Sequence record: OQ718158.1
Length of the DNA: 64,000 nucleotides
Strand: one strand, 5' to 3'
The translations under genes were made by a program, and so were the position numbers. The notes below the pieces were generated by a model, which searched no databases, had not been told where the DNA came from, and was given only the letters and a program-made list of their open reading frames with translations. Position 1 is the first letter of the stretch, and each line of letters begins with the position of its first letter. Positions 7,429-62,449 of this stretch are shown here, piece after piece.

Positions 7429-8567
7429 CCCTTTTACAAATATATGAAGATTTAATGCACTTATGTAATACCCGTGATGCTTTCTTTTATGTGGATCATA
7501 AAAGTCCTGCTGGTGGAACATATCGTGTATTCAGTTATCGTCTAGCATCATATACCGATTTCATGCAACCCAATGCATTAGAAACCCGTGGTTCTATGTG
7601 GGAAATTGATGAAGACGGTGATATGATTCGTTGTGCTGCTCGTACTATGAAAAAGTTCTTCAATGCTTACGAAAATCCTGCTACAATGTTCCCTGCTGAT
7701 ACCTCATTCGATGACATTGCAGTAGTGATGCCTAAGTTGGATGGTTCAGTAATCAGTACTTACCGTGATAATGATGGTGTAATTCGTTGTAAATCACATA
7801 CTGCATTGTATTCAGACCATGCGATTAACAGTACTCGTCTTCTCAATGAGAACCAAAATTTGTATCAATACATTGACGAAGCAGACCGTTTGGGCTATAC
7901 TGTTAATCTGGAGTATACAAGTCCAGAGTACCGTATTGTATTACCATATCAGGTTGAACAATTATTTGTACTAAACGTTCGCAATCGTAAGAGTGGTGAA
8001 CTATTATGTGGTTCTGCATTACGTAATAAGTTCCCATGCCTTGCACAGTACAGTACTAACATGACAGGTAAAGATATTCATTACACTTTCCCTGCTCGTG
8101 CTACATTCAAAGAAAGTGTTGAAGAAGTTAAGAAAATGCTTGACATTGAAGGTTTTGTGTGCATCCTAAATAATGGTACAATGTGCAAAATCAAAACCGA
8201 CTGGTATTGTTCTTTGCATTTAACGAAAGACAGTATTATAATCGATTCCCATTTATATGAAGCTGTATTAAATGGTTCGAGTGATGATTTAAAACAGTTG
8301 TTCAGTACTGACGAATATGCTACCCAAAAGATATTAAGAATGGAACAACTAGTCTTTTCGTGCTATAATGCTTTACAAGATGAAGTTGAAAGCTTCGTCA
8401 AGGAACACAAGCACTTGGAGCGAAAGGAATTCGCTAAGAAGGTTCAGGAGTGTTTAACTAATGAACTGAATCGTCAGGGCTTGGCCTTTGCAATGTACAA
8501 CAATAAGAAAGTCGATTACAAAGAGACTCTTATTAAGTACATGAAAATTGTACTAAAGGATTTTTAG
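7425..8567 (+). CDS. rnlA: RNA ligase 1 (T4 Rnl1-like)
   Basis: Motif I KLDGS, ETRG, NLEYTSPEYRIVLPY, EGFV, KIKTDWY. Confidence 0.92.
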   Translation: MTLLQIYEDLMHLCNTRDAFFYVDHKSPAGGTYRVFSYRLASYTDFMQPNALETRGSMWEIDEDGDMIRCAARTMKKFFNAYENPATMFPADTSFDDIAVVMPKLDGSVISTYRDNDGVIRCKSHTALYSDHAINSTRLLNENQNLYQYIDEADRLGYTVNLEYTSPEYRIVLPYQVEQLFVLNVRNRKSGELLCGSALRNKFPCLAQYSTNMTGKDIHYTFPARATFKESVEEVKKMLDIEGFVCILNNGTMCKIKTDWYCSLHLTKDSIIIDSHLYEAVLNGSSDDLKQLFSTDEYATQKILRMEQLVFSCYNALQDEVESFVKEHKHLERKEFAKKVQECLTNELNRQGLAFAMYNNKKVDYKETLIKYMKIVLKDF

Positions 8568-10322: not shown

Positions 10323-10325
10323 TAC

Positions 10326-10353
10326 AAAAGGGATCATATATTGGTCCCTTTTT
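10326..10353 (+). terminator. intrinsic terminator
   Basis: AAAAGGGATCA-tatat-TGGTCCCTTTTT. Confidence 0.85.
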
Positions 10354-10371
10354 CTTTTAAGGTACATTATA

Positions 10372-10548
10372 GTGAATGTAACAACACAGATGTTATTACG
10401 AAAAGACTACTTAGAAAATATAGAAAGATACTACAGAATGTCTTTGTATGAAAATAAACATAAAAATTATAATTTTAATAAACTACTAAATTCCAGTACT
10501 GAAGATTATCTATTTTCATCAATGTTTTATGTGAGAGGATTATTGTAA
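10372..10548 (+). CDS. 58-aa hypothetical protein (not in ORF track)
   Basis: GTG start, TAATG overlap with next gene. Confidence 0.5.
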   Translation: MNVTTQMLLRKDYLENIERYYRMSLYENKHKNYNFNKLLNSSTEDYLFSSMFYVRGLL

Positions 10549-10808
10549 TGGATAAATTTCACACAGATATATCACAGATAGGTAATCTTATCAATAGTCT
10601 AATTACTGATTTAGAAGAAAAGTACTTAGGACGAAATGTATACTTAGAAATGTATGAAACATATGGTGTTATTGATATGATTTATTACAGTGCATTGAAG
10701 TATGAAATACGTTTAACTGTATGTTTATATGAAAAAGGTACATTTAAAAGAAGTACTGCAATTCGTCAAGTTGGAGTTGATGACATGGAATTATACGAGG
10801 AACACTGA
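10548..10808 (+). CDS. small hypothetical protein (family A-like)
   Basis: KYLGRNVY; GAGG RBS. Confidence 0.7.
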   Translation: MDKFHTDISQIGNLINSLITDLEEKYLGRNVYLEMYETYGVIDMIYYSALKYEIRLTVCLYEKGTFKRSTAIRQVGVDDMELYEEH

Positions 10809-11059
10809 TGTTTGAGCAGGACTTAGAGCTATTCAAAAGTTATGTCGAGTACTTAGTTACATTAGAAAAAGAGCTAACGACAAAGTACAAAGGTATTCGT
10901 GTTCTGTGCTGGTATGATGATTCGGATTATAAACGTGAACTCACCATTGACCGAATCTATTTCATCGACGGTGTATTGAATGTGCATGGTGTAAATGATT
11001 TTGGACATTCATATACTTATTCGAATAATGCTAAATTCAAGAGGATTGACAATGAATGA
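10808..11059 (+). CDS. small hypothetical protein (family A-like)
   Basis: KYKGIRVLCW; TGATG overlap. Confidence 0.7.
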   Translation: MFEQDLELFKSYVEYLVTLEKELTTKYKGIRVLCWYDDSDYKRELTIDRIYFIDGVLNVHGVNDFGHSYTYSNNAKFKRIDNE

Positions 11060-22759: not shown

Positions 22760-23016
22760 CTTTCTTGATTTTAGGTATCCCATTTGCAGTTGTGATTCTT
22801 GTACTTTTAGTGATGATGGTATTAAATGATAATACTACTCCACCAGTGATGCGTAATCATGAAGTACGATTTTCAGCACAAAACAACAAGTACTACATTG
22901 TAAATTGTTTAACTTGTAAAGAGTATAAAGTAACTGGTAAATTTGGTTTTACCATTTATTATAAAGACCGTGTTGAAGCTGACATGATTTGTCAGAAACT
23001 TAATACGGTAGAATAA
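22756..23016 (+). CDS. small membrane-anchored protein
   Basis: N-terminal hydrophobic helix. Confidence 0.65.
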   Translation: MTFLILGIPFAVVILVLLVMMVLNDNTTPPVMRNHEVRFSAQNNKYYIVNCLTCKEYKVTGKFGFTIYYKDRVEADMICQKLNTVE

Positions 23017-23046
23017 AAAAAAAAGGAGCCATAAGGCTCCTTTTTC
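23013..23046 (+). terminator. intrinsic terminator (possibly bidirectional)
   Basis: A-run + GGAGCC-ataa-GGCTCC + T-run. Confidence 0.88.
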
Positions 23047-23137
23047 TTTTGTTAGTACACAACTTGTTTGAATTTCAGGAAAACTCTTAGATCCAACAAC
23101 GAGTTCAGTACTACCACGTTATTTGTTGACAAAAGCA

Positions 23138-23165
23138 TAGACATTATACATTAGTGTGATATAAT
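23138..23165 (+). promoter_or_regulatory. RGACA-N13-TGATATAAT promoter
   Basis: TAGACA-16 nt-TATAAT with TG. Confidence 0.75.
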
Positions 23166-23300
23166 CATTCAAAAGAAGGTAAAAAGGTGGGATGATTCTG
23201 CGAGGGAATTTGTGAAGTGATATAAAAAACAATTTGACTTAAGTTAAATCTTCCTATAATATTATTTATGTAATCAACAATCAACTAAGAGGGTTAACCA

Positions 23301-30557: not shown

Positions 30558-30563
30558 GTTCAT

Positions 30564-30743
30564 ATGAAAATTTTACTTGTACTAATCGCCGTTCTTATGG
30601 TATTATCTTGTTCAGTTAGTAATGGTTCATACATTTACGTATCAGTATTTGAAGAAGCACCAACGAACTGTGTATTAACTCACACTGGTATTGTGTTAGT
30701 TAATGGTAAACCATCAATCGAGTACTTATGTATAGGTGATTAA
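30564..30743 (+). CDS. small putative lipoprotein (59 aa, not in track)
   Basis: MKILLVLIAVLMVLSC signal with lipobox-like Cys. Confidence 0.6.
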   Translation: MKILLVLIAVLMVLSCSVSNGSYIYVSVFEEAPTNCVLTHTGIVLVNGKPSIEYLCIGD

Positions 30744-30746
30744 ATT

Positions 30747-30980
30747 ATGAAATTTATTTCTATTGCAATTGTTTCAGCACTCATGATGTTAGTAACAGGC
30801 TGTGCATCTAAAGTTCAGGAGGCTGATGCAGAGTTCATTCGCCAGAATTTGACTAAACTTAACTACGATGGCACATTGTATGCTTGCCATGAGATGCGTC
30901 ATGGGCAAGATCTTAATCTCATGTGCAGGAAGATTGTGAATCGCAAACGTCTTAATACTGTTCCGAAGGATGCACAATGA
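30747..30980 (+). CDS. small lipoprotein
   Basis: MKFISIAIVSALMMLVTGC lipobox. Confidence 0.75.
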   Translation: MKFISIAIVSALMMLVTGCASKVQEADAEFIRQNLTKLNYDGTLYACHEMRHGQDLNLMCRKIVNRKRLNTVPKDAQ

Positions 30981-31147
30981 AAGAAGTAATTGGTTACAAA
31001 TGTAAAAATTGTGGCAAAGATAAGGGTAAGCATTCAGTACAAGGGATGGCTTGTCCGAATCCAGGACGTGGTAATTTCAGAGGGTTCAGTACTGAAAAGT
31101 CTTACGAACTGGATCATACCAAACCTGTAATGGGTTATAAATTATGA
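30977..31147 (+). CDS. 56-aa Cys/His-containing protein (not in track)
   Basis: CKNCG...H...C; ATGA overlaps at both ends. Confidence 0.6.
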   Translation: MKEVIGYKCKNCGKDKGKHSVQGMACPNPGRGNFRGFSTEKSYELDHTKPVMGYKL

Positions 31148-48617: not shown

Positions 48618-49229
48618 ATGTCAAAATATCAGGTCTACTATGTTGCCAAACTATCACTTCTTGATGAGTTAAATCAAAGAAGTACACAGATGAAACGCTA
48701 TACATATAACGGTGTTACTTTCCGATACTTCCCACAAAAAGTACTTACATTCGTTAAGAATTGTAAATGCGTTGCGTGTGGTATTGAAGCTACTGAAGTT
48801 CGCATTGAGCGTTCACATAGCACTGATCCGGTATATGGTAAACCTCACTTAAATGTCTATGCAGTTTGTGGTCTATATGAAGTACTGATGACAGTAGATC
48901 ATAACCAACTAGCATCTAAGGGTGGACCTGATTTAGAGTCAAATTACAACACAATGTGTTCACGTTGTAACAGTCTTCGTTCTAATAAAACTGAATCAGT
49001 AGGTGAATTCCTGGAAAAAGTTAAGGGTAGAAATCTACTGGAAGAGCATATGAATGATTTTTTCAATAAAGATAAGAAGAAATCTAAAACTCCTACTCCA
49101 GAAGAATTGGAAGAACGCCGTTTACGTACAGAACTATGGGAAACCGACCATATATGGCATGTTCGTGATTTTGGACGACATATGAAAGCTCTAAAAAAAG
49201 AACAAAAGAAATTGAATAATCACAATTAA
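48618..49229 (+). CDS. HNH endonuclease
   Basis: CVACG; TVDH...SKGG.D...N...MCSRCN..R.N. Confidence 0.82.
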   Translation: MSKYQVYYVAKLSLLDELNQRSTQMKRYTYNGVTFRYFPQKVLTFVKNCKCVACGIEATEVRIERSHSTDPVYGKPHLNVYAVCGLYEVLMTVDHNQLASKGGPDLESNYNTMCSRCNSLRSNKTESVGEFLEKVKGRNLLEEHMNDFFNKDKKKSKTPTPEELEERRLRTELWETDHIWHVRDFGRHMKALKKEQKKLNNHN

Positions 49230-49283: not shown

Positions 49284-49640
49284 ATGAAATCTAAAATCTT
49301 TTTACCGCAGTTAATGTGGCATCTGGCAGAGTTAGATGAAGATGATGAATATACTGACTATGGTACATGGGATGACAGTACTGAATCATTCAATCCAGAT
49401 GTTAAGTACAAAATCATTAGTAATGAAAGTAAAGGGTATAGACGATGGACAGAAGAATTTGATCTAGTTTTTCTTGACATGAACACGAACAAATATTATC
49501 ATTGTACGTATGAACGAGGTTTAACAGAAGATAGACCAGCAGAACCATTCAGAAATGAAACTGATGGTGTTAAGTGCTATGAAGTTTCTGTTACCAGAGA
49601 AGAAATTATCACTTATCGAACTTTGTGGAAATATTTGTAA
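49284..49640 (+). CDS. hypothetical protein
   Basis: GGAG RBS. Confidence 0.75.
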   Translation: MKSKIFLPQLMWHLAELDEDDEYTDYGTWDDSTESFNPDVKYKIISNESKGYRRWTEEFDLVFLDMNTNKYYHCTYERGLTEDRPAEPFRNETDGVKCYEVSVTREEIITYRTLWKYL

Positions 49641-50038
49641 TGCTAAAAGAATTAGATTTTTCAAACTTAGAAATCATCAGTGCTGTTAAAAATATCTCTG
49701 ACTTTGGAGATGAGAAGTCAGTACTGGTAACTGTTACATTCGTCAAAGAACAGGATAGCTATAGCCATTTAGATGGTATTGAAGAACTAATTCACAAGAC
49801 TAATCTACAAAACGATGGTAAACTCATTAAGCTTCAGGCTTCCTATACGCAAAAATCGTCATTTTTTGTAGACCTAAATAATGTAGTCAAGGTGGTATAC
49901 AATCACCCTGAACACAAATACAGGAACACGACAAGAAACGAGAATGATGCTATAGACTCCAATATCAAAGAGGATGTCGAATTCATCAACACAATTTTTG
50001 ACCGTTGTTCCAAGGATTTGAAAAAGGTATACATGTAA
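49640..50038 (+). CDS. hypothetical protein
   Basis: TAATG overlap, ATG 49640. Confidence 0.7.
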   Translation: MLKELDFSNLEIISAVKNISDFGDEKSVLVTVTFVKEQDSYSHLDGIEELIHKTNLQNDGKLIKLQASYTQKSSFFVDLNNVVKVVYNHPEHKYRNTTRNENDAIDSNIKEDVEFINTIFDRCSKDLKKVYM

Positions 50039-50039
50039 C

Positions 50040-50067
50040 GGGACATAATACATCCTAGTGATATAAT
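50040..50067 (+). promoter_or_regulatory. RGACA-N13-TGATATAAT promoter of candidate ncRNA
   Basis: GGGACA-16 nt-TATAAT with TG. Confidence 0.75.
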
Positions 50068-50356
50068 GTATATTGTAAAATGACAACGGACATTGAAAAA
50101 TGGATAATGAGAACCTACTTCTCTTGAAAATGTAAAGGATAGATGAGCTTTACCGTTGTAGCGAACAGCAAAAGAAACCTGTTAGAGTACTGGCAATCAA
50201 ACAAACACGAGATAAGACCACGAATCACGGCGACACGGCTGTATAAAGAACTCCAATAAGCACACAGAGAGTTCCTAGATAGATGTATAAGGTTCGCACC
50301 TTACGAATTTGCTAAGGGAGTTCAAGGATTGTGGACGCGATTTTACAAGAAAGTTG

Positions 50357-50526
50357 CGTCCAAAATTTGAGAACAGGTACTACTTTGATCGAATAGAGTT
50401 TAGTACTGAGTGCTGTTGATGAAAAGACCAGCGACCGTTGCATATGACTGCGATAGAGAGAAACCGAGCAACCCGCTTTCGCTCTCTAAATTTTGGTACA
50501 GGAAAGATCCGTCCAAAATTTGAGAA
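50357..50526 (+). repeat. 17-nt direct repeat CGTCCAAAATTTGAGAA x2
   Basis: Copies at 50357-50373 and 50510-50526, each the 3' arm of a hairpin. Confidence 0.9.
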
Positions 50527-50562
50527 ATTCGCAATTCGATAATATCCGATGCCATCATCGTC

Positions 50563-50588
50563 AAGAGAGACTTAATTGTCTCTTTTTT
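50563..50588 (+). terminator. intrinsic terminator
   Basis: AAGAGAGAC-ttaatt-GTCTCTTTTTT. Confidence 0.85.
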
Positions 50589-50728
50589 ATTACCTTCATT
50601 CCCCTGCGGGGGGATGAAATAGTCCTCAACAAATCCCGTCAAGCTTTTAAAGTACATTATCATTTTCAGAAGGAACTAGTTTACGAAGTAAACGTAGTGA
50701 CTTCTTGAGTTACGAGAGAACGAAGTGA

Positions 50729-51157
50729 ATGAGTAACACAACGAAAATATCCAATACATCTGAATTAACACAAATGTTATTCAAAGAATATTTTGAGTAT
50801 CAAATCAAAAGCGATCATGATTTGGTTCAGACATATTTGAAGAGAATCAAAGATCCATTAAGTTTAAACAAAGGAACTGAATTTTATAACAGTATTTTAG
50901 ACTTTATTAATTTAGTTCATACAAACAGACCTATTGTAGTTTTCTTCTTTGATAAATCAATTCCTGTAGAAGTTCCTGATAATGTATTTTTTGTTACAGA
51001 AACTGATTTAAGTAATCAAAGTACTGTAAGTAGATTAAGGAATTGCTTACTTATAATTTGTGATTCTTCATTATATAACAATAGAGTACTATGGAATAGA
51101 AGTAAGAGAAATGCAGTTTCAGAAATGAATCCTGAAGTTACCTTTATTATTAACTAA
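50729..51157 (+). CDS. hypothetical protein
   Basis: 142-aa ORF. Confidence 0.65.
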   Translation: MSNTTKISNTSELTQMLFKEYFEYQIKSDHDLVQTYLKRIKDPLSLNKGTEFYNSILDFINLVHTNRPIVVFFFDKSIPVEVPDNVFFVTETDLSNQSTVSRLRNCLLIICDSSLYNNRVLWNRSKRNAVSEMNPEVTFIIN

Positions 51158-51160
51158 ATA
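51154..51160 (+). promoter_or_regulatory. candidate late promoter CTAAATA
   Basis: Upstream of Dps-like gene. Confidence 0.45.
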
Positions 51161-51187
51161 CCATAGAATAACTCTAAGGAGAGATTT

Positions 51188-51628
51188 ATGGAAAATATTA
51201 ATGATTTACGACATGTAATGGACTTTATCGGAGATACTGAAGAAGATAGTTCTTATGATGAAGTACTACTTACATTTATTGAGAATAGTTTATTTTTAAG
51301 TGCTGCTGCTCACAACTGGCATTTACAGAGCCATTTCTACACTAAGCACCTACAATTGGATGAACTATACAAAGAGTTACCTGAGTACGTTGATGCATTT
51401 GTAGAGGGTATTATGAACACTCGCGGGGCATTGCAGGTAGGTACTGGTAACAGTTATCGTTTTACCCCTATCGAGGATTGTGTACCAATTCTTGAAGAAT
51501 ATGTTAGTCAATGTAAAGCCATTCATGCTATGCTAGAAGAGGCTGAAGACTATGGTAGTACTAACACGCTAGAAGACATTATGAGTTTTTGTGAAGGAAT
51601 GCTTTACAAACTTAAAGTTTTACAATAA
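51188..51628 (+). CDS. Dps/ferritin-like protein
   Basis: AHNWHLQS...KHLQLDELY..L..YVDAFVE. Confidence 0.8.
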   Translation: MENINDLRHVMDFIGDTEEDSSYDEVLLTFIENSLFLSAAAHNWHLQSHFYTKHLQLDELYKELPEYVDAFVEGIMNTRGALQVGTGNSYRFTPIEDCVPILEEYVSQCKAIHAMLEEAEDYGSTNTLEDIMSFCEGMLYKLKVLQ

Positions 51629-59046: not shown

Positions 59047-59450
59047 AAACATTCAACATTGTTCATATAATTGAACCGATTGCAGAACATATTAAAAACA
59101 TAAGTAAGAACGAGTCAGGTTTTTTCTTCAATTTAGACAAACTTCATCGCTATACCAATGTATCTAGTTTTAATCGTGCTAAGAGACTTTACATCCGTAT
59201 ACACAACCTATGGTACAGTGACGATACGTTGATGATAGATATCACGGTTGGTGAAGAAATAACATTAAGATATATTGACGATTTTAAATCAGATGATATT
59301 CGTGCTGGATCATTACCAATTGATGCTTCATATGAAGAATATCTGCAATACCAGTTCATTGATGACACATTTGGATTTGACTTTGAACTATATAATAGTA
59401 TAATGAACGTATACCATATATACGAAAGGAATTTGAATGGACATTCGTAA
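59043..59450 (+). CDS. hypothetical protein (family B)
   Basis: EEYLQYQFIDDTF. Confidence 0.7.
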   Translation: MKTFNIVHIIEPIAEHIKNISKNESGFFFNLDKLHRYTNVSSFNRAKRLYIRIHNLWYSDDTLMIDITVGEEITLRYIDDFKSDDIRAGSLPIDASYEEYLQYQFIDDTFGFDFELYNSIMNVYHIYERNLNGHS

Positions 59451-59859
59451 AATACCAAATTTCCACAGTACATTAAGGTACTTTTCTGAACAAGAAATCA
59501 GTACTGAAATACGAGGCATGATTTCGTATAATCAATATAGAGTACTAACCACTAATAAATTTCAGGGTACAGTACGTGTAAAAATACGAAACGCGTTAGT
59601 AGAGAATGATGAATTATTAATTACACTTAGAAAAAGTAAGATAGAATTAGCATACGCAATTTTCGATACTACATGTGATTTGATGTGGAACACACTGTTA
59701 AAAAAAGAAGGTTCATTGCCAGTTTATGATAATGGTCCTGAAACACTTGATCAGTACATGTTCATTGATGATACATTTAGTATTGACTATCCATCATTTC
59801 AGTGTATACTAGATATACATGCAAAATATTACGACCGTCTACGTGATAGATTAATTTAA
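59437..59859 (+). CDS. hypothetical protein (family B), tandem paralog of previous gene
   Basis: ETLDQYMFIDDTF. Confidence 0.7.
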   Translation: MDIRKIPNFHSTLRYFSEQEISTEIRGMISYNQYRVLTTNKFQGTVRVKIRNALVENDELLITLRKSKIELAYAIFDTTCDLMWNTLLKKEGSLPVYDNGPETLDQYMFIDDTFSIDYPSFQCILDIHAKYYDRLRDRLI

Positions 59860-59870
59860 TTGGAGGCATT

Positions 59871-59993
59871 GTGATTACAGTATTAGAAGAAGATTGGGGT
59901 GTTTCCGAGCAAGGAACAGATGAATATGAATATCCAGAATATCAGCCAAAAGGCTTCTGGGAACGTCTACGTGATTGGTTGATGGGGGAATGA
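59871..59993 (+). CDS. 40-aa acidic peptide (not in track)
   Basis: GGAGG RBS + GTG; ends KGFWERLRDWLMGE. Confidence 0.55.
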   Translation: MITVLEEDWGVSEQGTDEYEYPEYQPKGFWERLRDWLMGE

Positions 59994-59994
59994 T

Positions 59995-61110
59995 ATGAAA
60001 AAGTATTTGGTTGGTGGCTACGTTCGTGACCGTTTAATGGGCATCCGTGCAAAAGACAAAGATTATGTTATTGTTGGTGCTACCGAATCCGATATTAAAT
60101 ACTTGCAAAGTATTGGATACAAGCAAGTAGGTAAGGATTTCCCTGTATATCTAAGTCCAGAAGGTAATGAACACGCATTAGCCCGTACTGAGCGTAAAAC
60201 TGGTACTGGATATGGTGGCTTCGAAGTGAATACAAAAGGTGTGACACTAGAACAAGATCTATATCGTCGTGATCTCACAATCAATAGTATTGCATATGAT
60301 CCAGTACTCCAGATTCACATCGACCCTTATGGCGGGAAAGCTGATATCAAGAACAAAGTACTTCGTCATGTATCAGAACACTTTAAAGAAGATCCATTGC
60401 GTGTTCTACGTTTGGCCCGTTTCGCAACGCGTTACTCCGACTTTACAATCCATGATGATACTATGACAATGTGTAAAGATATGGTTAGTACTGGTGAACT
60501 AGACCATCTAGTCCCAGATCGTGTTTTTGTTGAATTCGAAAAAGCACTTTCTGAAGAAAACCCTTCCAAGTTTATCAAAACTCTGGTACAATTTGGTTAT
60601 TACGAAAAGGCATTTACTACAGTTCCAGTTACCAAGAAACGTCTGGAATTAATTGATGCTATCGCTACAAATTGTACAGAAGAATATAAACCATATTTCT
60701 TATGGACAGTACTTCTTGAAAATGAAGAAGTAAATAATGATTCAGTACTTAACGGTTCCATTAAGGTTCCAGTTAAGTACGTGAAGTTTAGTAATTACAT
60801 CAAGCGTTTCCGTGAAGATATTAAAACCTTCCGTAAGAAGACCCCAGTTGAAATGGGGCAAATCTTACTGGATATGAATATCAAAAACAATGGTGGTGAA
60901 GATTTCCTTTACAAAGTACTGGAAAACTTCATTTTGAACAAAGAAATTGATTCTGAACTTGAAGATTTGATTATTAAAGTTTATGATCGTTATACTGATG
61001 TTGAATTACCTGATATTCAGCAGTTAGTGAAAGATGGTGAACTCCAAACATCGGAGATTCGTGATTTTGTTGCTGAATTGCGTATTGAAGCAATCAAGCA
61101 AATGTTCTAA
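59995..61110 (+). CDS. cca: CCA-adding tRNA nucleotidyltransferase
   Basis: VGGYVRD, DKD, VGKDFPV, ARTERK, DLYRRDLTINSI, EDPLRVLRLARF. Confidence 0.95.
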   Translation: MKKYLVGGYVRDRLMGIRAKDKDYVIVGATESDIKYLQSIGYKQVGKDFPVYLSPEGNEHALARTERKTGTGYGGFEVNTKGVTLEQDLYRRDLTINSIAYDPVLQIHIDPYGGKADIKNKVLRHVSEHFKEDPLRVLRLARFATRYSDFTIHDDTMTMCKDMVSTGELDHLVPDRVFVEFEKALSEENPSKFIKTLVQFGYYEKAFTTVPVTKKRLELIDAIATNCTEEYKPYFLWTVLLENEEVNNDSVLNGSIKVPVKYVKFSNYIKRFREDIKTFRKKTPVEMGQILLDMNIKNNGGEDFLYKVLENFILNKEIDSELEDLIIKVYDRYTDVELPDIQQLVKDGELQTSEIRDFVAELRIEAIKQMF

Positions 61111-61630: not shown

Positions 61631-61868
61631 AATTTATGGTCGCACTACTGGTTGTAAATTCTGCGACACTGCTAAAGCAGTATGTGAAAATAACAAATTT
61701 GATATGGAGTTTATCGATATTGTTACCGCTGGTATTGATGGTGCTAAACTATCTGAACTATGTGGTGAGCCAGTACGACAGGTTCCACAAATTTTCGTAA
61801 ACGATGTTTACGTTCCAGGTGGCTGTACTGGTTTCGTTGAAGGTCTTAAAGAAGGTCGCTGGAATTAA
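61620..61868 (+). CDS. glutaredoxin
   Basis: CKFC active site; RQVPQIFV...GG. Confidence 0.9.
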   Translation: MKVKIYGRTTGCKFCDTAKAVCENNKFDMEFIDIVTAGIDGAKLSELCGEPVRQVPQIFVNDVYVPGGCTGFVEGLKEGRWN

Positions 61869-62110
61869 TGAATATTGATAAAGTATCATCTCGTGCAAAA
61901 CATTTAGCTGACACATTGGGTGTTGAATTTAAAATGCCTGATATGGAAGCTGCAAAAGTTAAAGCACAACGTAAAATTCACAAAATGAAAGAATACACTA
62001 CTAAGAAAGAACAGTACGATAAAGCGGTTGCTTATATTATTGAAGCTTTCAGTAAAGATGATATTTTGGCATTCATCGCTTCAGTAGAGGTTTCGAGCAA
62101 CCCTAAATAA
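61868..62110 (+). CDS. hypothetical protein
   Basis: TAATG overlap. Confidence 0.7.
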   Translation: MNIDKVSSRAKHLADTLGVEFKMPDMEAAKVKAQRKIHKMKEYTTKKEQYDKAVAYIIEAFSKDDILAFIASVEVSSNPK

Positions 62111-62155
62111 TAATGAAGAACACAAGTTCTTCGTAACAATTTGGGAGATACTATT

Positions 62156-62398
62156 ATGCTCAGTTTTCGTGAACAATTAGCAAAAGGCCAATTCGCTGCT
62201 AAAGCTCAAACATCCATTCCTAAAAAGTCTGCTTTCTTAGGGACGATTACAGAAGATGGTTATTGTGATTATAATGCACCAGAAGATTCATGGTACATTA
62301 CGAAAGACACAAAACGTGGTAATAGACTTCACAAAAGTACCATTGCTCGCAAACAACGAAAAGAATTGAAAAAAATTCGATTCGGTGAAGAAGAATAA
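62156..62398 (+). CDS. small basic hypothetical protein
   Basis: GGGAG RBS, ATG 62156. Confidence 0.7.
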   Translation: MLSFREQLAKGQFAAKAQTSIPKKSAFLGTITEDGYCDYNAPEDSWYITKDTKRGNRLHKSTIARKQRKELKKIRFGEEE

Positions 62399-62408
62399 AA
62401 TATAAATT

Positions 62409-62438
62409 AAGGACTCTGATTACAGAGTCCTTTCTTTT
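62409..62438 (+). terminator. intrinsic terminator
   Basis: AAGGACTCTG-atta-CAGAGTCCTT + TCTTTT. Confidence 0.85.
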
Positions 62439-62449
62439 CGGAGAATATA

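Follow-up and report, generated by a model that had tools for sequence, protein, structure and literature searches.

The stretch of DNA analysed here (the window) comprises 64,000 nucleotides of sequence record OQ718158.1, given as one strand from 5' to 3'. Two of its hypothetical genes, EcMJ_247 (window 49625-50038) and EcMJ_248 (50729-51157), enclose a gap at 50039-50728 that most phage records leave unannotated. Positions 49600-51200 are 100% identical to positions 111600-113200 of the record of Escherichia phage vB_Ec-M-J, an Asteriusvirus jumbo phage. An earlier note on this DNA had singled out the gap as poor in open reading frames (ORFs) and rich in G+C, and had placed a candidate large ornate non-coding RNA in it. 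Both compositional observations hold. The longest stretch of the window devoid of ORFs of at least 60 amino acids lies here (50087-50399), the whole gap is the second longest devoid of ORFs of at least 100 amino acids, and the G+C content of 50075-50588 is 0.403 compared with 0.347 for the window, a value reached by 3% of equal-sized windows. The same segment has a minimum free energy of -133.3 kcal/mol (z = -3.84), and none of 100 shuffled sequences folded as well. Judged by the comparative evidence described below, the gap holds the gene for a non-coding RNA of roughly 515-570 nucleotides, predicted to extend from about 50075 to 50641 on the plus strand.

This RNA belongs to a family that occurs in two to five copies per genome in all Rak2-like jumbo phages examined, which represent at least five genera. 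No record has copies on both strands. Profile searches with nhmmer recovered all copies. The collection comprises 57 distinct full-length sequences, which measure 393-546 nucleotides between the first position of the core and the distal box (see below). Unlike the flanking genes, the non-coding stretch is recognisable by blastn at 66-71% identity in distant genera, at three to five places per genome in Mimasvirus (GAP32, CBB, XbC2), Eneladusvirus (BF, fHe-Yen9-04), the 7t3 group, and XaC1; the two diverged full-length copies of RaK2 were found by profile search only. Asteriusvirus has four co-oriented paralogues, A to D, and the window copy is A. The B copy, at about 196.4 kb of the vB_Ec-M-J record, sits between endonuclease VII and baseplate hub genes and is transcribed against its neighbours. 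The C copy (59306-60209 of the same record, at about 59.5 kb) lies upstream of a methylase gene, approximately 2 kb before the window start, and the D copy follows a gene for a sigma factor, an arrangement shared with RaK2. In ph0011, copies lie at about 61, 116, 199, and 315 kb of 348 kb. The contexts of the copies are orthologous across genera, and the neighbouring genes differ by paralogue (endonuclease VII plus baseplate hub, sigma factor, Dam, or ADP-ribosylglycohydrolase). Pattern scans of IMG/VR revealed additional copies on uncultivated contigs of 355-371 kb, and one such scan of the JGI metagenomes returned four loci, three of which are copies of the same phage clade. The only match from one pattern scan of the GTDB genomes, in a Nitrospira metagenome-assembled genome, was due to chance and was not confirmed by nhmmer; a scan of a plasmid collection gave no match, and eight loci from a scan for the G/C hairpin described below were discarded as chance matches. 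The family is apparently undescribed and, as far as these searches indicate, confined to one clade of Gram-negative jumbo phages plus a copy in an Escherichia coli island.

The structure of the RNA was derived from a 34-sequence alignment of copies (A2), which was used for all helix statistics and in which all column pairs were searched for stacked, compatible, and covarying pairs without an energy model. The curated structure consists of 98 base pairs in 18 helices. These pairs are formed in 94.4% of the alignment cells, compared with 79.8% after shuffling of the partners (none of 500 shuffles reached the observed value) and 39-45% in a control with partners slid by 1-3 columns. Compensatory changes on both sides were found for 64 of the 98 pairs, and the covariation score is 0.423 as opposed to 0.05-0.08 in the controls; covariation among homologues was one of the checks suggested in the earlier note. 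In an RNAalifold consensus of 21 copies, double changes of the compensatory kind were seen for 45 of the 82 pairs. Two further pairings proposed by RNAalifold, GCUAAGG/CCGUUGC (with which pseudoknot PKc competes) and GAUG with the distal CGUC, were without covariation support and were rejected. Three pseudoknots (PKa, PKb, and PKc) emerged from the search without an energy model and a fourth (PK0) is supported separately. The predicted fold thus combines four pseudoknots with no fewer than 15 helices. Many of the pairs are U.G pairs, and the plus strand is therefore the folded strand. With a length above roughly 400 nucleotides, covarying junctions and pseudoknots, conserved unpaired nucleotides, and a non-coding character, the family falls into the descriptive class of large ornate non-coding RNAs. 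The proposal of such an RNA is thus borne out by covariation, by the lack of a conserved ORF, and by the lack of matches to Rfam, tmRNA, or RNase P. The features of the locus are, from 5' to 3':

50040-50067, plus strand: promoter with a -35-like GGGACA (50040-45) and an extended -10 element TGaTATAAT (50059-67), a 10/12 match with the TG.
50083-50089, plus strand: 5' strand of PK0, ACAACGG, pairing with CCGUUGU (50153-50159) in the loop closed by P3.
50091-50102, plus strand: small leader hairpin CAUU-GAAA-AAUG of the minimum-free-energy fold, at a site that varies across the family.
50115-50142, plus strand: P1/P2 hairpin, CUA..UCUCUU, loop GAAAAUGUA, and AAGGA.UAG (helix 1; double changes in 7/8 pairs, 97.8% paired).
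50143-50162, plus strand: invariant GAUGAG followed by P3, GCU (50147-49) with AGC (50160-62) (helix 2; 100% paired, 2/3 pairs covary).
50165-50242, plus strand: P4, ACAGC (50165-69) with GCUGU (50238-42), around P5, CUGU (50179-82) with ACGG (50227-30) (helices 3 and 4; 4/5 pairs of P4 covary).
50233-50286, plus strand: PKa, ACA (50233-35) with UGU (50284-86) (helix 5; double changes in 3/3 pairs, 98% paired).
50248-50274, plus strand: P6 hairpin, GAACUC (50248-53) with GAGUUC (50269-74) (helices 6 and 7; double changes in 6/6 pairs).
50288-50303, plus strand: P7 hairpin UAAGG-UUCGCA-CCUUA (helix 8), with AU-to-GC compensation; only 71% paired on A2, because the alignment shifts there.
50313-50319, plus strand: single-stranded UAAGGGA, invariant in 34/34 aligned copies.
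50322-50374, plus strand: optional hairpin module 1, GGACGCGAU (50333-41) with GUUGCGUCC (50353-61), present in some paralogues only; copy 1 of a 17-mer lies in its tail.
50376-50407, plus strand: long hairpin P9, GGUACUACUUU with AGAGUUUAGUACU (helix 9; double changes in 12/12 pairs), whose loop bears one strand of PKb.
50388-50394, plus strand: PKb, AUCGAAU in the P9 loop with AUUCGAU at 50534-50540 (helix 10; 6/7 pairs covary, 99.6% paired).
50410-50435, plus strand: P10 hairpin, GUGCUG...CCAGCGAC (helix 11; double changes in 3/6 pairs, 89% paired).
50433-50480, plus strand: most conserved core, with the invariant GACCGUU, PKc, and P12 (helices 12 and 14; 100% paired, compensatory changes).
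50449-50533, plus strand: P11, UGCGA (50449-53) with UCGCA (50529-33), closing the 3' junction (helix 13; double changes in 3/5 pairs, 98.8% paired).
50483-50526, plus strand: P13, UCUC (50483-86) with GAGA (50522-25), extended by optional module 2 (helix 15; 4/4 pairs covary).
50488-50521, plus strand: module 2, AAAUUUUGG (50488-96) with CCAAAAUUU (50513-21) and the tip ACAGGA-AAGA-UCCGU; copy 2 of the 17-mer lies at 50510-26.
50548-50565, plus strand: P14, GAUG (50548-51) with UCGUC (50558-62), and the proximal box AUCGUCAAG (50557-65) (helix 16).
50566-50588, plus strand: intrinsic terminator hairpin, AGAGAC (50566-71) with GUCUCU (50578-83), loop UUAAUU, followed by U6 (helix 17; 4/6 pairs covary).
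50595-50618, plus strand: G/C hairpin UUCAUUCCCC-UGCG-GGGGGAUGAA (helix 18), nearly invariant and the best conserved element of all.
50635-50643, plus strand: distal box CCCGUCAAG, also given as CCGUCAAG (50636-43), a direct repeat of the proximal box and the 3' limit of the conserved unit.
50709-50737, plus strand: remnant of "domain 2", GUUAC (50709-13) with GUAAC (50733-37); the loop contains GAACGAAGUGA and the ATG (50729) of ORF 50729-51157.

Several of these elements are variable in sequence and constant in pairing. PK0 is compensated in A-class orthologues (UCAGUGG/CCACUGA in A4, ACAAUGG/CCAUUGU in JNE01), and a homologous helix with other sequences exists in 31 of the 34 aligned copies; the fixed columns are paired in 75.7% compared with 21-47% when slid. 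PKa occurs as AUG/CAU, AUA/UAU, or ACA/UGU, and the PKb sequence is paralogue-specific (AUCGAAU, AUUGUAU, GUCAUAU, or GUCGAAU). P14 has the compensatory variants GACGA/UCGUC and GAUGC/GCGUC, as well as AGCU/AGCU in RaK2. At the position of the leader hairpin, other paralogues form a different local hairpin, for example CAAGGA...UCCUUG, and the insert at 50183-50226 within P5 has a long or a short form depending on the paralogue. Other bases are fixed: GAAAA and GUA are invariant in the P1/P2 loop, as are the bases AACCCGC in the loop of P12 (GAGAG, 50456-60, with CUUUC, 50476-80), inside which PKc is formed (GUUGC, 50437-41, with GCAAC, 50468-72). This core at 50433-50480 is the only stretch that blastn still detects in RaK2. 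No supported partner was found for the invariant UAAGGGA, and the partner proposed by RNAalifold is occupied by PKc. All eight complementary pairs reported in the earlier note are present in the sequence. Five of them (50083-89/50153-59, 50288-303, 50332-62, 50377-406, and 50488-521) are evolutionarily supported, and the one at 50377-406 extends to 12-13 base pairs, each of which covaries. In the other three the conserved partner lies elsewhere: 50165-69 pairs with 50238-42 instead of the long-range 50411-17 assigned to 50164-70, 50248-53 pairs with 50269-74 and not as 50248-54/50317-23, and within 50454-88 the segment 50456-60 pairs with 50476-80 rather than with 50482-88.

Could the region code for a small protein instead? 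Two reading frames exist, a 38-codon ORF at 50143-50259, which begins at the invariant GAUGAG, and an 87-codon ORF on the minus strand (50400-50663), and some GenBank records annotate small hypothetical proteins there. However, the same AUG opens only 7-46 codons in relatives, neither strand has a long ORF that is shared by the copies (the longest span 24-90 codons and have no fixed position), phage A4 has a 5-nucleotide insertion inside the 38-codon ORF, and the indels among copies are not multiples of three. Substitutions show base-pair compensation. The conservation is not due to the 38-amino-acid frame, a caveat raised at the outset, and a protein-coding function of the region has a negligible probability. 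Strings of tiny "hypothetical proteins" cover the RNA loci in the GenBank records of 7t3, WPEC3/5, SD-2_S15, fHe-Yen9-04, UE-S1, and others, and one record has a "repeat_region" feature; the strings are probably mis-annotations. Further stretches of the window without ORFs of at least 100 amino acids are 10323-10994, 30558-31143, 888-1456, and 22760-23300. Another ORF-poor stretch, 61631-62449, was considered as a second RNA and rejected; the annotation of relatives places several genes for small proteins there (thioredoxin, macro domain/phosphatase, Nudix). Near the RNA gene, the window contains an ORF resembling HNH homing endonucleases (48618-49229, 800 nucleotides upstream) and, downstream, a Dps-like ORF ("starvation-inducible DNA-binding", 51188-51628), both unlinked to the other paralogues.

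The RNA gene is preceded by a promoter from which transcription would start at about 50073-50077. The corresponding promoter class (a TGRRAC box, 11-15 nucleotides, and TGnTA(T/A)AAT) was found upstream of 50 of 56 family members. A promoter class with a TGAAACG -35 element has been described for CBB and GAP32 (PMC5259590), and the assignment of 50040-67 to a "class promoter" was right, because the class matches that of these two phages. In the window, extended -10 sites (TGnTATAAT) number 15 on the plus strand and one on the minus strand, several of them with a TGRRAC box and located 5' of protein genes; plus-strand promoters of this kind include those at 8341, 11951, 14173, 28523, and 61115. 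With regard to an antisense promoter like that of the ColE1 regulator RNA I, the minus strand shows promoter-like hexamers at 50099-50045, which occur at chance frequency. The terminator, placed at 50563-88 in the earlier note, is confirmed as a U-run preceded by a hairpin (50566-83) that covaries in the family, and it was not listed by a simple terminator scan of the window. It is missing in 6 of the 34 aligned copies, which run directly into the G/C hairpin. The search of all column pairs found no covariation partner of the terminator 5' arm other than its own 3' arm. With the promoter upstream of 50 of 56 copies, the B copy transcribed against its neighbours, and a terminator arm without an alternative partner, the RNA gene is, by these sequence features, an independent transcription unit. 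A literature search found no transcriptome of any Rak2-like phage.

These data bear on the idea of a cis-acting leader, that is, a giant riboswitch or attenuator that would respond to a signal and control read-through into downstream genes such as ORF 50729-51157. Co-oriented genes follow the RNA in four of five paralogue classes, with a terminator standing between RNA and gene, and in the window ORF 50729 begins inside the loop of the domain 2 hairpin, within a region (50709-50737) whose nucleotide sequence does not vary among A-class orthologues. However, downstream of the B copy there is only the 3' end of a convergent gene, and downstream of the E. coli copy approximately 700 nucleotides of non-coding DNA. 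The downstream genes are unrelated between paralogues, a covarying anti-terminator partner is lacking, and six copies do without the terminator. A leader function is thus very unlikely.

The unit does not end at 50588 as had been assumed. Conservation extends to about 50641, and a further conserved hairpin follows at 50709-50737. The GGGGGAU of the G/C hairpin is found in 57 of 57 copies, and the U.G pairs of this hairpin work on the plus strand only. The proximal and distal UCGUCA boxes vary in parallel between lineages (CGUCAAG, CGUCAG, CUUCAAG). Domain 2 consists in most copies of two covarying hairpins with the loops GAACGAAGUGA and GAA, for instance downstream of the copies at loci L009, L007, and L002; only the first of them survives in the window. 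A TTGACA downstream of the unit, initially taken for a -35 box, proved to be an arm of a covarying domain 2 hairpin.

An R-loop origin transcript, one of the possibilities named in the earlier note, would suit the conservation beyond the terminator, with the copies as replication origins. In that case the transcript would be a primer in the manner of ColE1 RNA II or of T4 oriF/oriG, or would form an R-loop; the G/C hairpin and the boxes would be the part acting at the DNA level, replication of a 350-kb genome would start from the two to five copies, and the E. coli island would be amplified upon infection. Several origins of T4 depend on promoter-driven R-loops, and priming by ColE1 RNA II requires its correct folding. 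The family resembles these systems in being a promoter-driven RNA of about 0.5 kb that depends on its fold and has a G-run and a C-run near its 3' end, and the copies are several, dispersed (as are the T4 origins), and co-oriented. In CBB, the promoter class has been reported upstream of DNA-synthesis genes (PMC5259590). Unlike in ColE1 RNA II and oriF/oriG, however, an efficient-looking terminator precedes the conserved downstream DNA and would free the RNA before this part is reached, and the tertiary structure is far more elaborate, with four pseudoknots and many invariant loops that exceed the needs of a primer. Cumulative GC skew has no inflection at the locus, RaK2 manages with two copies at a similar genome size, and the U.G pairs of the G/C hairpin indicate plus-strand RNA or a single-stranded form. 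On balance we regard an origin function as unlikely.

The two boxes could also be viewed as sites of a ribozyme whose core would catalyse, for example, self-processing at the boxes, or the cleavage or ligation of other RNAs. The complexity of the fold and its invariant unpaired nucleotides are reminiscent of large ribozymes, the boxes change in parallel between lineages, and the homology of the bacterial copy stops at the distal box. A parallel change would be expected equally from a shared protein site or from alternative pairing with the 5' arm of P14, though, and the family has neither similarity to the Rfam ribozyme models nor an exon context. Catalysis of this kind appears quite improbable.

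Comparison with known RNAs yielded no relative. Rfam 15 at gathering thresholds gave nothing relevant in the whole window, and permissive searches of 49900-50800 (E<=10) and of six other family loci (E<=1) gave no relevant match, which settles the Rfam-type scan recommended beforehand. A literature search retrieved no description of the element. The statement that no tmRNA, RNase P, or group I pattern is apparent agrees with negative results from Rfam, ARAGORN, and a comparison with rnpB. Bacterial RNase P RNA has a similar size and a pseudoknotted core, but it is encoded by a single essential copy whose CR-I and CR-V strands form P4, unlike this multi-copy family. RNase P identity was rejected in view of the two to five copies, the absence of Rfam matches, and the lack of significant similarity between the family (nhmmer profile and blastn) and E. 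coli rnpB. A motif at window 50433-50476, CGACCGUUGCA...ACAGAGCAACCCGC, resembles J11/12 of the E. coli RNase P RNA (CCACGACCAGUGCAACAGAGAGCAAACCGCC); the resemblance is not significant, and the helices around the motif are arranged differently. A further RNA with several pseudoknots, at about 400 nucleotides, is tmRNA. This identity was discarded as well: ARAGORN detected no tRNA or tmRNA in the window and no tmRNA at the 57 family loci, tRNA-like ends are absent, and no tag reading frame is conserved. Group I or II introns were dismissed given the absence of an Rfam match and the intergenic position of the copies, which have their own promoters and flanking genes unrelated between copies. 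PA5oct, a distant relative of the Rak2-like phages, produces abundant non-coding transcripts of 236-619 nucleotides according to RNA sequencing (ncRNA001-004; PMC7318152). Comparison of ncRNA001 and ncRNA002 with the family gave no profile match and no shared motifs; ncRNA003 and ncRNA004 were outside this comparison.

The earlier note had placed the RNA in the spirit of ROOL and GOLLD. As a description this is fair: like these RNAs, the family is phage-borne, occurs occasionally in bacterial chromosomes, measures hundreds of nucleotides with many covarying helices and pseudoknots, and has no linked protein gene. Membership, on the other hand, is not supported. The ROOL and GOLLD covariance models matched neither the whole window nor the locus nor six other loci, and the family is smaller, has two to five diverged paralogues per genome, is restricted to one clade, and lacks tRNA neighbours; across the 57 loci, ARAGORN found tRNAs at L012 only, about 9 kb from the copy. 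The likeness nevertheless suggests an alternative in which the RNA would assemble by itself into a homo-oligomeric ring or cage, with some of the pseudoknots, chiefly the 7-bp PKb between the P9 loop and the 3' tail, as intermolecular contacts; the functional entity would be the particle. A cryo-electron microscopy study describes ROOL, GOLLD, and OLE, which are natural ornate RNAs, as forming homo-oligomers (PMC12286853) and thus provides a precedent. An RNA-only particle would be in line with a large, pseudoknot-dense phage RNA that lacks a linked conserved protein gene, and the paralogue-specific PKb sequences would keep the assemblies homotypic. Arguments to the contrary are the missing sequence or covariance-model similarity to ROOL and GOLLD, the missing tRNA association, and the core of about 470 nucleotides, which is smaller than in these RNAs; moreover, covariation is blind to whether pairing is intra- or intermolecular. 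We consider such a particle improbable.

A 17-mer, CGTCCAAAATTTGAGAA, had been noticed twice at the locus, each time as the 3' arm of a hairpin. There are indeed exactly two occurrences, 50357-73 and 50510-26, where chance alone would give about 0.03, in each case as the 3' tail of a long optional hairpin module. The module is inserted after UAAGGGAG, within P13, or at both sites, and many paralogues have one copy or none. It therefore behaves as an extension at the periphery of the structure and not as the core of its function, and we read the hairpin modules in this way and not as the two binding sites of a protein sponge or decoy, a suggestion that is weakened by their optional nature.

An intact copy of the RNA gene together with its promoter was found in 2 of 5,426 complete E. 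coli genomes, LR-29-1 (human) and EEC_W5 (chicken). In LR-29-1 (NZ_AP027515.1) it occupies L038:11951-12496 within an integrative island of about 10 kb (L038:7900-18300) between ffs and ybaA. Also encoded there are a tyrosine integrase that is interrupted by IS3, a resolvase, a 150-amino-acid ParB-like protein, and three proteins matching the PADLOC candidate defence system PDC-M45 (DuOB, DUF488, mSLOG-DUF4326). Homology to the phages spans exactly AACCUGAUCC to CUCGUCAG (80.6% identity with the B copy of Eneladusvirus) and stops exactly at the distal box; the 4.2 kb around the island copy contain no other phage homology. The bacterial copy, the multi-copy family, the pseudoknots, and the conserved elements past the terminator had gone unnoticed in the earlier note.

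A discrete cassette in an island, and HNH endonuclease genes no more than 1-2 kb away from two of the phage copies, might point to an RNA that belongs to a mobile element and guides or scaffolds its RNA-guided nuclease or recombinase, as omega RNA, reRNA, or bridge RNA do, with the G/C hairpin and the boxes as the element end. The arrangement of a subterminal hairpin with a short repeated box behind it resembles the ends of IS200/IS605-type elements, which we take as a lead only. OMEGA/HEARO RNAs and the reRNAs of TnpB are likewise large, pseudoknotted, and sometimes located near HNH genes. Nevertheless, identity with OMEGA/HEARO or TnpB guides was rejected: no IscB or TnpB gene is adjacent, no HEARO or other model matches, and the variable 5' leader is engaged in PK0 and not free. 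IS110-type or other conserved protein genes are not linked either. The insertion sites are orthologous across genera and the copies are therefore old and immobile, which leaves the guide explanation with a remote chance.

The explanation that we favour, at a rough probability of 0.4, is a trans-acting RNA with a rigid core and invariant unpaired bases that would bind one conserved partner, either as part of a ribonucleoprotein or as a decoy. Action in trans is suggested because the neighbouring genes differ, the B copy has no downstream gene, and the E. coli copy stands alone. The RNA would be made together with many phage genes of the same promoter class, in early or middle infection if the class is a guide to timing, and would fold into a rigid tertiary core. 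On it, the unpaired GAAAA, GAUGAG, UAAGGGA, GACCGUU, AUAG, AACCCGC, and GGGGGAU could form the binding surface for a single partner, perhaps a factor of the host or a protein of the phage. The optional modules, the duplicated 17-mer among them, would serve as peripheral braces, and the paralogues might supply dosage or slightly different specificities.

Several points weigh against a trans-acting RNA of this kind. The gene is known here from sequence alone, and the proposed timing of its expression follows from the promoter class. The G/C hairpin, conserved better than any other element, sits past the U-run of the terminator; read-through or a role at the DNA level is therefore needed, which an explanation based on a partner in trans does not predict. 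Given domain 2 downstream of most copies, the RNA unit may extend further or be composite. Elaborate folds rich in invariant unpaired bases are also typical of ribozymes and RNA-only assemblies. Finally, the island copy would fit the logic of titrating a partner, but this is speculation. A more far-reaching proposal is that the family represents a new RNA class that acts without a dedicated protein, as a ribozyme or self-assembling particle, and that the E. coli island has captured it as an anti-phage decoy; we hold this to be rather unlikely.

New classes of large pseudoknot-rich RNAs are rare, and RNase P, tmRNA, group I and II introns, OLE, ROOL, and GOLLD have opened fields or remain open. 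We rate the family as new at the level of the RNA class, without a relative in Rfam 15 or a mention in the literature searched; the category of large ornate phage RNAs has precedents. In dozens of GenBank records of jumbo phages, the "hypothetical proteins" over these loci should become a non-coding RNA feature. The family is present in cultivable coliphages such as 121Q, PBECO4, and phAPEC6; they can be grown on laboratory E. coli, which makes genetics and biochemistry directly feasible, and its two to five diverged paralogues over at least five genera offer enough natural variation for a confident secondary structure. The copy in a defence island hints at a role of the RNA in the conflict between phage and host.

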